From positions 1 to 64,000 of the forward strand of contig DF237299.1 of the NCBI GenBank assembly GCA_000708835.1: a DNA stretch of 64,000 nucleotides. The letters are read 5' to 3'. A model generated the notes under the pieces. That model ran no database searches. It was given only the letters and a program-made list of their open reading frames with translations, and was not told the origin of the DNA. The DNA is from Klebsormidium nitens (lineage: Eukaryota; Plantae; Klebsormidiophyceae). Below are positions 31,766-42,975 of the stretch, one piece after another. A program made the translations under genes and the position numbers. The first letter of the stretch is position 1. Every line of letters begins with the position of its first letter.

Positions 31766-34700
31766 ATGGCGCCGGCACCGTTAATGAGACCTGAGACTCT
31801 GTTGGACGACAGATTTGAAGTGGAGAGGAAAATTGGGGAAGGAACGTTCAGTATCCTCATTGTAACGCCATCAGTTTCAGCATTCCATTCGCTGCTTCTG
31901 AAGTTGTTTTGTTGCTGTTGATGTTCTCTTGCTTTCCTCACTCTTTCTTAATGAGGTTTGTCTACTCTCCGCATGAAGTGTTGACCATCACAATATTCAA
32001 ATACCTTTCAGCTGGAAGTACTGCGTCTTGTCTGGCTTCAACTTTTTGTAGCCAGAATCTCCTCGACCTGCTGTGTCCATCCTTGACCCCGTACTTCTCG
32101 TAAAGGCGAAATTTACCGTGCCGTTGACCGACAGACGAGCGAGCTGGTCGCGATCAAAGTTGAGAAGGAGGACCGCGTCCTGAAGTGGGAGAGCAGTGTG
32201 CAGAAGCGTCTGCAGGGTGAGACAGCGCCGCTTTCCAGCCCCAGATCCTTTTGTTAAAACCAGTTCGTGGTGGATGACTTTGACACAAGTCAATACATCT
32301 GGAGGACTACGCTTCATTCGTAGATTACCATTTCAATGAAATGATCAATTTTGTTGTTGTGCTTCTCTATCTCCTGGTGAAAGTCTGTTTTTACTTTGTC
32401 AATTGTGATGCAGATAGGGATGTTCACAATGTTTTCAGGAGCCCTGCGCTTCATATCCTTGAGCACAGCTCCAGGAATCACTGCATGAGCTTGTGGCTTC
32501 ACGTTCTCATTAGCAGTACAGATGCAATTCCAATTCCAATTCAAATGCAAGGACATCGAAAAATTGTAGGCGCATGCCTCATCTGCCTCTTTTTAGATCT
32601 ATCACTAGGAGAGGGTTTGTTCCCTTCCCCTCAGATTGCCCCTATGTGTGCCGTCACATCATTGCCGGCGAGCACAATGGACGCAACTATCTTGCCATGG
32701 AACTGCTGGGGAGCAGTTTGTCGGACCTGCGGAGAGGGCAGCCTGAAGGCAAGCTGTCAATGGCGACGACCATCTCCATAGGGATCCAGGTAATAAAGCC
32801 ATTACTTAAACTCGGATACCTACAGACGATGGCAATCGCTTCCACCATCCCTGCTGCTAATGGTACCAGACGCTGTCCTCCTAGAAGCGGCTTTCTGATA
32901 CATGATGACAGACCACTGTGTTTTGTTGGCTCCGACGCGCTATGTTACTGCTTTTGCTGTGCCTCTTCTCCTGCCTTAGTTTGTCGAATTGCTTCCTGCA
33001 GCTGTTGAAGGCGATTCAAGGAATACATGAGCTTGGCTACATCAACCGTGACATCAAGCCAGTGAGTATGGTATGCCTTTGGTCTTTTAAAAGAGGGGTT
33101 CAGTAGTTAAATTTGTGTTGCAGATGCTTCACTCTCTGAACTTCCTCCTATTCATGTTTGGTAAATATGATGTTCAGTATAGCATCGGCTGCTTGACATT
33201 GTTAGATGTCTCTCTTCTACCTTCTCAGACTACCGCTTATTCGCCGTAGACTACCTTTCTATCCTTCTTAGATTCTTGTCATCCTCGTCATGCAGTCCAA
33301 CTTTTGCATAGGGCTCGGCGCCAAGGCACGGCAGTGCTTTATGGTTGATTTCGGGTTGGCAAAGAAGTACCGGGACTCAGAGGGCCGGGTAAACCCTGCA
33401 AGACCAGTTGCAGAGTTCCGGGGAACGTCTCATTATGCATCTGTCAATGCGCACAAGAGTAAGGTGAGTTCGAAAGCATCTTCAAGTCTGGCAGACTCTT
33501 TTGTTTGTAGGATCACCTCTCATCTCGTTGTTCATCATTTTGCCGTTGCCTAACGACCTGCACCGAGTTGCTCAAATCTGACATTGAATCACTATGGTTC
33601 GTGCTGCAGGAGCTCGGACGGAGGGACGATTTGTGGAGCCTGCTCTATGTTTTGGTAGAGTTTCTGGAGGGAGATCTGCCGTGGAGGTCGCAGTCGAACA
33701 AGGTGAGTCTAAGTCATCGTCTTATAGGCATCGACTGTCATTTTGCCTGTAAGGACAAGTTGCGCTGGTGCTGGTTGGCATGAACTTATCAATCACATGA
33801 ACCAATGGCAGCTCAGAGTCCTAAGTGCATCTGGCTAGCTTTGATGACGGTCCGAAGTCCTTCAATGCAGGACAAGATACTGGAGTCGAAGGAGTTCTAC
33901 AACCAGAACCCTGAGAAGTTCCTTCGGTTTCTGGAAACACCCAAGCAACTGCAGGTAAGACACTTCCCCAACCAAAAGCCAAAGGGTGGGAGAAGAGAAG
34001 CTAGGATTGCATCATCAAGATCTGGCTGGGGACACACGAATCAGAACAATAAATGACCCCTTACGTTCGTGGTGCGCTGATGCCTCCAACCTTCTGCAGG
34101 ATTTTGCAAGAACTTTGAGCGGGTTGGAGTATGAGGAGGACCCCGACTATGCACACCTGCTGAGGCTTCTAGAGAGCCTCCTGGAAGAGCTGGGTGTACA
34201 GGTGAGCACTGGGCCCCAGCAAAATCAAGTTTACTTTGCCAAGCTTGTGGAATTGTACCCTCGTGAGAGGATTGTTGCTGAGAGGCGAGCAACTATCAGA
34301 AATGAGGAAGCGGAAGGAACATACAATTCCATGTGCAAACAGGGGTGTTAACGGAAGCAGTTGTTCCGTTCTGATAAGAGGTGCTGCCTACAAGGTGGTC
34401 TCTCAGACACAAGCTTCTGTCTGCAGCCGGACGCACTATTTGACTGGGAGGCAAGCGAGGCCCCAGGGGAGGGAGGGCAGATGGGTGCGGTCGAGAGAGA
34501 GCCGTCGCCGTCCCGGCCCTTGCTGGAACTGTCAAGCCCGGCACAAGAGAGTGGCGAAATCAGCAACGCATTGCATGAGTTAGCGGAGGATGGAAGAGCA
34601 GGAAACGGGGCAGAAAACGATGCAGACGCTGTAACTTCCCCTACAGCGGAGCAAAGCGACAGAGTGCAAGAAAAGAGGCCGGAAAACACGATGCACCTGC

Positions 34701-40700: not shown

Positions 40701-42975
40701 AACCAGGCTTCGCTCAACAGTGTCGAAAGACGTCAAGGCTAGGTTCATGTTCGTGTGCGGATTTTGCGCAACCTGGAGTGTTGTCTTGCTGCGGTGGCCT
40801 TGGGGGTGCTACCTCCCTTGCTCTTCACCACTGAAACACCATCCATTTCTAGGGTGGGAATGACATTGTGTGAAGGACCAAGCCCTATGTCCGACTGTCT
40901 TGCAGGAGCCCAAGGGGATGGCCAAGAAATTTTTCGTCACCGACCACGAGGGCCGCAAGTACTGGAGCACCATGAAGCGCGGCCCGGCACAGCCCAACCA
41001 GCACCACCTCGCGGCTGTGCTGGAACACGACTTGACGCACCTGGTGAGACCCCACAGCACGAGCGCTTGCGCTCAATGCAAAAAGGACGGTGGAGCCCTA
41101 TGTGGTGACAGCGGATTCTAGTTCAGATAGAAGCCAACGTCTTTTGAAGTTGTTAGTCGAGCTGGGGCAGGACTCCCAGGGGATGATTGAGGAAAGATGG
41201 GAAGGGAAACTTGGAAAAGTGCTGAATGCTTTCCTTCTTTGGCATCCCCTCCGCGCCTGGACGCCTCAAGCAGCAGGAGAAGCCCCTTCGGTGCCGTATC
41301 TTCTGAGATAATCAATGTGCTCTCGCTCGAAGCGATTCCGGGGAAATACCTCGTGGAGCCTTTAACGACCATATAAGCGATCAGAGCGTCGTTCCTAAAA
41401 CCCAAAACGTTAAAACGCCAAAATCATAGTTTCGCAGAACCCAACAAAACCCAGATCTAATGACACGTCAAACTAGCAATCAAAAACCCAGAACTCAAAC
41501 CTAACTCACGGTGGGCAGTGCCCTCATTTCGAGTTGCAAAACTCGTAACCTACTCTGCTTAATTGACCTCACCTCCAAGGGCAGCCTGCCGTTATTCCTA
41601 ACCACCGCGCATTGTAACCGCGGATATTGCAGCGTCACATTGTACGTCTCCTGAAAATACTGCGCCACGCTCTTGGTGACTGGGGCCGCGTTGGTCTCCG
41701 ACGGCTCGCCACGTGGCTTGATGGCAAAGCTGCAACGTGTAGATTGATAGATTGAGGTACTTAGGTGCGAATCGCAAATTGCATCGAAGTGAACTCGGTA
41801 TGTCTCTTGTCTGCCTCCATTCTCGTCCTCTATTTACGGATGAGGGGATCTCGTAGCGCGATCATGACTAGAATGGTAAAACAGTATTTGTCTTGTACTC
41901 CGCTGCACCCTCTGCTCTACCCTTTTAAATCTGCGTCTGTGCTCCGATCCGGTGTTTGCACCTCTTCATTTCCTCCCCCCTTCGCATCTGCCCGCTTCTC
42001 GATAGCCGGCATCCGTACAACTGCCTTCCTCAAAATCTCCACCCTTACAAAGATCCAGTTCTTTCACGTTCATTCTCCAACATCCGATGTCTAAACGAGA
42101 TCACCTCCTTTCGCGTGTGTTCCGCAGGGTCTCTGCCCGCAGCTTGTTTCCATTGACTGGACTGTCGGCAAGAAGCAGGCGGGTAACGTGCTCCGCTTGG
42201 CGGGGCCCTGTACGTGCGTGGGCGTCCCTCTCGCCCCGCCCCTGGTGCCCATGTCCCCCAAAAACAAGGCCCGGTTAGGGTTGCAGTCGGGCAGCGACGC
42301 CCATCTGAACCACTTGGCAGCAGAGGAACGGTTCGGAGGGGGGAGCCTGGGGGACGCAAAGGGCAAGCGGAAGGCTGGCAAGAAAGCCAACCGGCCCCCG
42401 GTAGTCAGCCCGGTGAGTGAACTGATTCTTGATCTAGATTGGAATCTAGCTCCGTCGTTGAGTGTTCTCTCACTTTTTGACACCTCGAGCAGCTGGTTTG
42501 CATATTGGGGGTCTCCTGTTTTGTTGGTTGCCCTCGACCTTTTGCTTTGCGAACCATCACAGTGGTCAGCCTCTCTGGGTAGACCGTGAACTATCACCAG
42601 TTTTATGTCTGACCAAAATGTTTTTGTCCTTTGCCCCAGACGGCCGCCGAACTTGCAGCTTTTCCGACCCTAGACACCACTGCGCCGCTCTCGCCCGCCT
42701 CACAAAAGAAGCGCCTCGTCAGCGTGCCAAGTAGAAAGGGCTTCGCCACGCCCCTGCAATCGCCGGGACCTTCACAAGGGGGGCTCGCGGAGACGGTGGG
42801 TGGCGCAGAGTGGGTGCCGGAGGGCCATGAACCAAGCGTATCGGTGGAAGCGGAGGAGCAGTCTGCCGGGGAGCAGGCGGCATTCTGGGAGGAGATCAAG
42901 GGAAACGTGAAGAGTCGGGAGCTGCAAAGTCTGAACTCGGTTTTGGTAGCGGGTAAGCGGCGGCGAGGTATGTGA
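31766..42975 (+). CDS. Large CK1/tau-tubulin-kinase-family protein kinase (~2000 aa) with RE/RD tract, two CCCH fingers, RS tract, NURR/hnRNP Q-like domain and a C-terminal domain of unknown identity
   Basis: Kinase exons: KIGEGTFS|EIYRAVD..VAIKVEK; [16 protein letters not shown]; GYINRDIKP|[16 protein letters not shown]; [13 protein letters not shown]; [25 protein letters not shown]; YEEDPDY. Phase-consistent exons continue: 34425-35298, 35490-35592, 35822-37911, 38296-38462, 38819-39941, ~40389-40504, 40906-41044, 42128-42412, 42640-42975. The last two exons are less certain. Confidence 0.85.
31851..32105 (+). other. Putative U12-type (minor spliceosome) GT-AG intron, first intron of the CK1/TTBK kinase
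   Basis: Donor GTATCCTC; branch-site TCCTTGAC at 32080-32087; AAG acceptor with no strong pyrimidine tract. Splicing restores GEGTFSEIYR. Confidence 0.75.
41573..41729 (-). pseudogene. Isolated Argonaute PAZ-like exon, antisense within a kinase intron
   Basis: Open 52-codon exon between TTGCAG acceptor and GTGAGG donor: [52 protein letters not shown]. It resembles the AGO PAZ C-terminal pattern (K/T)SVxxYFxExYxxxLxYPxLPCxxV...LP(L/M)E. No other AGO exons were recognised. Confidence 0.6.

Follow-up and report, generated by a model that had tools for sequence, protein, structure and literature searches.

A TTBK-like kinase gene with an RNA-binding-type tail in the alga Klebsormidium nitens, and its possible place at nuclear ribonucleoproteins

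Contig DF237299.1 of the streptophyte alga Klebsormidium nitens (assembly GCA_000708835.1) raises the question of whether one gene joins a CK1/TTBK-type protein kinase to CCCH zinc fingers and to tracts rich in Arg-Ser (RS) and in Arg-Asp and Arg-Glu (RD/RE), and, if so, what such a protein would do. We analyzed a 64,000-nucleotide (nt) stretch of this contig, referred to here as the window, in which an earlier note had placed such a gene on the plus strand at 31766-42975 and had read it as a candidate RNA-tethered splicing kinase. The structural part of this proposal, a single gene for a TTBK-like kinase with a CCCH/RS/RD tail, is in our judgment very likely to be correct. As for the whole statement, in which a conserved gene of this kind has an RNA-type tail that would also target the enzyme, we lean slightly towards it.

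The gene model was built by collecting stop-free segments of the plus strand, enumerating the GT..AG pairs that keep the reading frame, and reading the junctions directly. The region has 48-62% G+C and reads as intron-bearing eukaryotic DNA. It resolves into 17 exons, all on the plus strand, with only GT-AG introns, and every junction, checked one by one, is phase-consistent. The coding sequence is 6090 nt long, a multiple of three, and comprises 2029 codons and a TGA stop at 42973-42975. It fills exactly the span given in the earlier note, and an in-frame stop lies upstream of the start codon at 31712-31714.

Three assembled relatives allow this model to be compared across taxa. L001 (Logan assembly of SRR23617307, 9229 nt) covers exons 1-14, L002 (Logan assembly of SRR14092360, 9017 nt) covers exons 9-17, and L004 (ENA metagenome assembly ERZ26273096, 10574 nt), which is more distant than L001, covers exons 1-11. 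Against L001, exon identity is 83-92%, with gaps in exon 11 alone, most of them multiples of three; the introns are 58-73% identical, with many indels that are not multiples of three, and the donors and acceptors of all 13 covered introns are conserved. Identity to L004 is 56-80% in exons and 40-49% in introns, exons 1-11 stand in the same order, and each of the 10 introns lies at the same place with GT-AG kept. In L002, the blocks conserved by tblastx are the exons, and the splice sites of exons 9-16 are conserved; the exon 17 acceptor has no alignment at its mapped offset, although an AG that could serve instead is present a few nucleotides upstream. We take 42973-42975 as the true end of the coding sequence because the stop position is common to L002 and conservation stops there. 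Exons 12 and 14 must be internal, since neither contains a methionine codon. The phase check at each junction, and splice sites and reading frames kept in three relatives to a degree that chance would not produce, bear out the earlier claim of one phase-consistent gene.

The question turns on intron 8 (34202-34426, 225 nt), which separates the end of the kinase domain (exon 8, 34100-34201, closing with ..LEELGVQ and no stop codon) from the first tail exon (exon 9, 34427-35298). This is where two adjacent genes could have been merged by mistake, a stand-alone TTBK-like kinase ending within 34202-34351 and a CCCH/RS protein starting from an ATG near 34481, all the more as the single-gene model is drawn from comparative genomics rather than from transcripts. 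Reading through the exon 8 donor does meet an in-frame TAA after 49 codons. However, the tail made in this way is not conserved: the read-through segments of the window, L001 and L004 bear no relation to one another and run for 49, 13 and 20 codons, respectively. The intron is 67% identical to the window in L001 and 42% in L004, with indels that are not multiples of three, and its length, 225 nt in the window, 260 nt in L001 and 222 nt in L004, means that a read-through would leave L001 out of frame. What is kept in all three is the donor (CAG/gtgagc) and the acceptor (..tgcag/CC), with phase 0 on both sides. Likewise, the 18 opening codons of exon 9 are followed by an in-frame ATG in the window and L001, but L004 lacks it, with no in-frame methionine among the first 40 codons of the exon. 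The exon is conserved from its acceptor onward, opening with PD..FDWE in three taxa, and the 18 codons ahead of the first methionine in the window are conserved as coding sequence, with a ratio of non-synonymous to synonymous substitution (dN/dS) of about 0.2, starting exactly at the acceptor. Two genes would, moreover, have to fit a 3' untranslated region, a promoter and a 5' untranslated region into about 130 nt. We therefore consider a merger of two genes very improbable.

As a separate observation, if intron 8 were retained, the kinase would be extended by 49 unconserved codons up to a stop (34202-34351), and a hypothetical kinase-only product of about 335 amino acids would result.

Selection on the two parts of the protein was estimated by Nei-Gojobori counting, with codon differences counted per exon and then summed. 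The kinase exons have a dN/dS of 0.066 against L001 and of 0.045 against L004, the latter with dS saturated. The tail exons lie between 0.04 and 0.22 (exon 9 at 0.18 against L001, exon 13 at 0.09 and exon 14 at 0.04). By comparative genomics, then, the kinase and the RNA-binding-type part are one gene, held under purifying selection in at least three related algae.

What kind of kinase is it? Searches of Pfam, the PDB, profile libraries and the ESM Atlas were made with single exons as queries, each searched separately. The kinase occupies residues 1-286 of about 2029 (exons 1-8, 31766-34201), and a long non-catalytic tail follows. Exon 1 (31766-31850) supplies the start codon and the glycine-rich loop (IGEGTFS, read across intron 1 as IGEGTFSEIY), and its ATG and donor are kept in L001 and L004. 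The VAIK lysine and the alpha-C glutamate (LKWE) are in exon 2 (32106-32216), which is gapless, 87% and 77% identical at the nucleotide level to L001 and L004, respectively, and conserved at its splice sites. Exon 4 (33002-33061) holds the catalytic loop, with the catalytic Asp and Asn (NRDIKPSN), and exon 5 (33296-33463) holds the DFG motif and the activation segment. Exon 7 (33871-33954), from the C-lobe, is gapless and conserved in L001 and L004.

Exons 3, 5 and 6 were each searched against all PDB chains, and each matches TTBK1 or TTBK2 first. For exon 3 (32635-32789, the hinge and alpha-D/E region), TTBK1/2 are the sole phmmer matches, at 36.7 bits and E 2.8e-08, with no CK1. Exon 5 scores 54.2 bits with TTBK1 and 44.5 bits with the best CK1. 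Exon 6 (33610-33702), which carries the TTBK-signature helix (DDLWSL..LVEF..LPW), scores 36.9 bits with TTBK2 and 23.1 bits with the best CK1. All significant PDB matches of the kinase exons are CK1-group kinases, and none belongs to the CMGC group of SRPK and CLK. Judged by these matches, the kinase is a member of the TTBK family within the CK1 group, which sharpens the CK1/TTBK assignment proposed before.

The other matches of exon 5 were set aside. P0007-P0010 are ordinary CK1 fragments, and P0006, from the ENA metagenome contig L005, is a canonical HRD-type TTBK whose similarity to the window is limited to the kinase exons. This canonical TTBK gene (4490-10444 of L005) has different intron positions and adjoins a reverse-transcriptase open reading frame. 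In a survey of kinomes from 2011, TTBK entries are confined to unikonts, some chromalveolates and excavates (PMC3218828), and a literature search found no paper connecting TTBK with Klebsormidium.

The tail begins in exon 9 with an acidic stretch, followed by an RD/RE tract at 34724-35222 that is densest at 34952-35177, where 19-24 RD or RE dipeptides fall within 50 residues. Two CCCH fingers come next, the first at the end of exon 9 (35225-35296, C-x8-C-x4-C-x3-H) and the second in exon 10 (35490-35592; finger at 35518-35577, C-x7-C-x6-C-x3-H, with x4 in L004). Both fit the pattern C-x7-8-C-x4-6-C-x3-H, and their Cys and His ligands are invariant in the window, L001, L002 and L004. Exon 11 (35822-37911) opens with an RS tract (35885-36037) of 11-13 RS or SR dipeptides per 50 residues, a density that qualifies it as an RS domain, and continues into a long low-complexity region. 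The positions of the RD/RE and RS tracts are kept in L001, L002 and L004, with a shorter RS tract in L002 and L004. The elements that the earlier note had listed are each present at or near the coordinates it gave: dipeptide density locates the RD/RE tract (put at about 34750-35220) and the SR-protein-like RS tract (about 35880-36050), and spacing together with ligands conserved in four taxa supports the two fingers, which are sub-threshold in Pfam.

Within exon 11, the sequence MQSFDTA..GAK.AAGL....GGDKRP occurs once in the window (36428-36520) and in three tandem copies in L002 (1950-2290), and could represent a short linear motif that has been repeated.

A helical block interrupted by intron 11 follows, at 37841-37911 in exon 11 and 38296-38425 in exon 12 (38296-38462; 62-85% amino acid identity in L001 and L002). 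The final 23 residues of exon 11, which include its first helix, are identical in three taxa and align with positions 4-26 of the 70 in PF18360 (hnRNP_Q_AcD). PF18360 is the acidic or NURR domain of SYNCRIP, where it works with RRM1 (PMC5827114). The block may thus be a relative of the hnRNP Q NURR/acidic domain. Its exon 12 half, as the sole query, has no match in the Pfam, PDB or profile searches. An ESM Atlas lead for exon 12, to helicase dimerization domains, was rejected as too weak (score 0.90; recognition 1615 against 2300, the level reached by 91 in 100 known-family proteins). The idea of a PWI-like domain across exons 11 and 12, of the kind at the N-terminus of RBM26/27, was dropped in favor of the weak PF18360 match.

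Further on, after a Pro/Ser/Gly-rich region in exon 13 (38818-39941, gapless against L001), a conserved C-terminal block spans four exons, from 39810 to 42220. It takes in 39810-39941 of exon 13, exon 14 (40389-40505), exon 15 (40906-41043, with KKFFVTD.EGRKYWS and 80% amino acid identity to L002) and the start of exon 16 (42128-42412), which then runs into a basic linker and whose tblastx block and splice sites are kept in L002. Identity in this block is 77-95% for L001 and L002, as far as each covers it, and the block, which corresponds to the unknown C-terminal domain of the earlier note, has no usable match in Pfam, the PDB (phmmer and profile) or the ESM Atlas with exon-by-exon queries. 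Metagenome scans with the exon 13 tail and exon 15 found no more distant homologues. Exon 17 (42640-42975) encodes the C-terminus, a conserved helix-like motif and a basic KRRRG, and has its TGA at the same position in L002. The final codons (..RRRGM and the stop, 42967-42975) overlap a good donor-like site, AG/GTATGT.

What might a kinase with such a tail do? Several considerations lead us to infer that the tail targets the enzyme, much as the TTBK2 tail directs that kinase to centrioles and microtubule ends. Both RS domains and CCCH fingers are common modules for residence in speckles and for RNA binding. In animals, TTBK2 is brought to its sites by its tail, and an RNA-binding protein, TDP-43, is a substrate of TTBK1/2 (PMC4407412). 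For Arg/Asp dipeptide repeats, a role as drivers of nuclear speckle condensation has been reported (bioRxiv 10.1101/771592). By analogy, speckle-like ribonucleoprotein (RNP) condensates in the nucleus would take up the algal protein through its RS and RD/RE tracts, and its CCCH fingers would keep it bound to RNA; there the kinase would phosphorylate itself and nearby RNP proteins. Our most likely working model is a kinase that resides in RNPs or speckles and has itself and its neighbors as substrates. Pre-mRNA splicing would be one possibility among nuclear RNA-processing roles, so that 'splicing kinase' is an inferred label. A bolder form of the model, in which a klebsormidiophyte TTBK-type kinase lives in nuclear RNP or speckle condensates by virtue of its CCCH, RS and RD elements, phosphorylates RS/RD-rich RNA-processing proteins independently of SRPK, CLK and PRP4K, and is the first of the TTBKs to combine an RNA-binding tail with a role in nuclear RNA, seems to us rather unlikely as a whole.

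Several points weigh against this picture. To begin with the tail, the Pfam model zf-CCCH_2 scores 18.5 bits on exon 9, under its cut-off of 25.8, and exon-by-exon Pfam scans found no RRM or other defined RNA-binding fold in any exon, the N-terminal RRM of classical SR proteins included. The NURR-like domain of the earlier note holds up in part: a helical block is present, but the match to PF18360 covers only the first part of it, at E 0.023-0.049 and 14-15 bits, where the cut-off is 26. Protein-sequence searches with exons 9 and 11 (for exon 11, full HMMER over 1.84 billion representatives) returned only P0001, P0002 and P0003, which are genomic open reading frames of L001 and L002 (the first two orthologous to exon 11), and no K. 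nitens protein, spliced product or transcript. The architecture was traced by protein and metagenome searches only to close algal relatives, with none found outside Klebsormidium-like algae. As to action, the localization and substrates proposed above are taken entirely from analogies with animal cells, and CK1-group kinases are not, to our knowledge, RS-dipeptide kinases. Finally, in the catalytic loop the HRD motif reads NRD (33041-33049, exon 4; NRDIKP in place of HRDIKP) in the window, L001 and L004. This is the sole motif deviation, and the change from His to Asn could mean that the kinase is weakened or inactive.

The last point invites a different reading, in which there is one gene whose kinase domain, a pseudokinase or an enzyme of very low activity, would serve as a binding or scaffold module of a nuclear CCCH/RS protein. 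The same NRD in three taxa would fit such a loss, yet the HRD histidine is not itself catalytic, and PKA has a tyrosine at this place. The VAIK lysine, the alpha-C glutamate, the catalytic Asp, the catalytic-loop Asn (DIKPSN) and the DFG motif are all present, and the dN/dS of 0.05-0.07 is as low as would be expected of an active enzyme. We regard a pseudokinase as quite unlikely.

The tail bears on another possibility, that the single gene keeps the ancestral TTBK role at microtubules or basal bodies, with the RS and RD/RE tracts no more than disordered, charged filler of a generic kind, and with protein contacts, or something other than splicing, as the work of the CCCH fingers. Characterized TTBKs are all cytoskeletal or ciliary and have long low-complexity tails (PMC4407412), but the algal tail lacks the motif by which TTBK2 binds EB1: no SxIP-type sequence ([ST]x[IL]P) occurs in any exon translation. 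Low-complexity tracts evolve easily, and the length of the RS tract does vary among the relatives; nevertheless, the RD/RE tract, the RS tract and the two fingers occur together, with order and positions kept in L001, L002 and L004, and the sub-threshold match to PF18360 is to a domain of an RNA-binding protein. A cytoskeletal role is, in our estimate, fairly unlikely, and we continue to prefer an RNP-resident kinase.

Around the gene, the nearest upstream neighbor is a multi-exon gene for an Hsp33-family chaperone (25708-30151, minus strand; Pfam HSP33, E 2.5e-06 on one exon), which lies head-to-head with the kinase gene. About 1.6 kb separates it from the kinase-gene ATG, with the same arrangement in L004, and this gap provides an example of real intergenic spacing at the locus. 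An Rfam scan of the window gave no match.

A literature search for the combination of a kinase with CCCH, RS and RD elements found no description, in agreement with the earlier remark that such cargo is not known on TTBKs. To judge from the sequences and papers found, a TTBK-family kinase with an RNA-protein-like tail appears to be unprecedented and so far confined to Klebsormidium-like algae. Because the family has been traced only to close algal relatives, the evidence stops short of an unrecognized regulatory system of wide reach. What the locus suggests is that, in a streptophyte that stands near the origin of land plants, a swap of tails re-aimed a TTBK kinase chassis at RNA or RNP particles. 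If the function is as proposed, the small set of kinases that control RS-domain proteins would come to include a CK1-group enzyme, the link between TTBK1/2 and TDP-43 would gain an evolutionary counterpart, and the protein would be a natural example of RS, RD and CCCH modules directing an enzyme to condensates. Should the function prove false, the gene would still be a clean, lineage-restricted domain fusion of which the literature search found no description.

Comparison with known systems places the protein between several families. With hnRNP Q/SYNCRIP it shares the 23 residues at the end of exon 11, which resemble the NURR domain, but in the algal protein no RRM adjoins them. The algal tail may be likened to ZC3H13 and ZC3H18, in which one or more CCCH fingers stand beside long low-complexity stretches of Arg-Asp/Arg-Glu and Arg-Ser and a conserved interaction region at the C-terminus; no RS- or RD-rich CCCH protein of this sort is known to have a kinase domain. 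CLK and PRP4K have an RS-rich region of their own beside the kinase domain and reside in speckles, which is like the action proposed here. In contrast to SRPK, CLK and PRP4K, which are CMGC-group kinases, the algal enzyme is of the CK1/TTBK type and has its RS tract C-terminal to the kinase, and it has the CCCH fingers that SRPK and CLK lack. TTBKs are cytoskeletal and ciliary kinases whose site of action is set by disordered tails, and animal TTBK1 and TTBK2 are the closest counterparts of the kinase exons, with the same type of activation segment and the DDLWSL..LVEF..LPW helix. The overall layout is also alike, an N-terminal kinase followed by a long disordered tail, which in the animal enzyme recruits the kinase (PMC4407412). 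The algal protein differs in reading NRD for HRD and in its host, a streptophyte alga from a lineage not listed for TTBK in the kinome survey (PMC3218828). It differs most plainly in the tail, which has no similarity to the animal tails and in their place has two CCCH fingers between an RD/RE tract and an RS tract.

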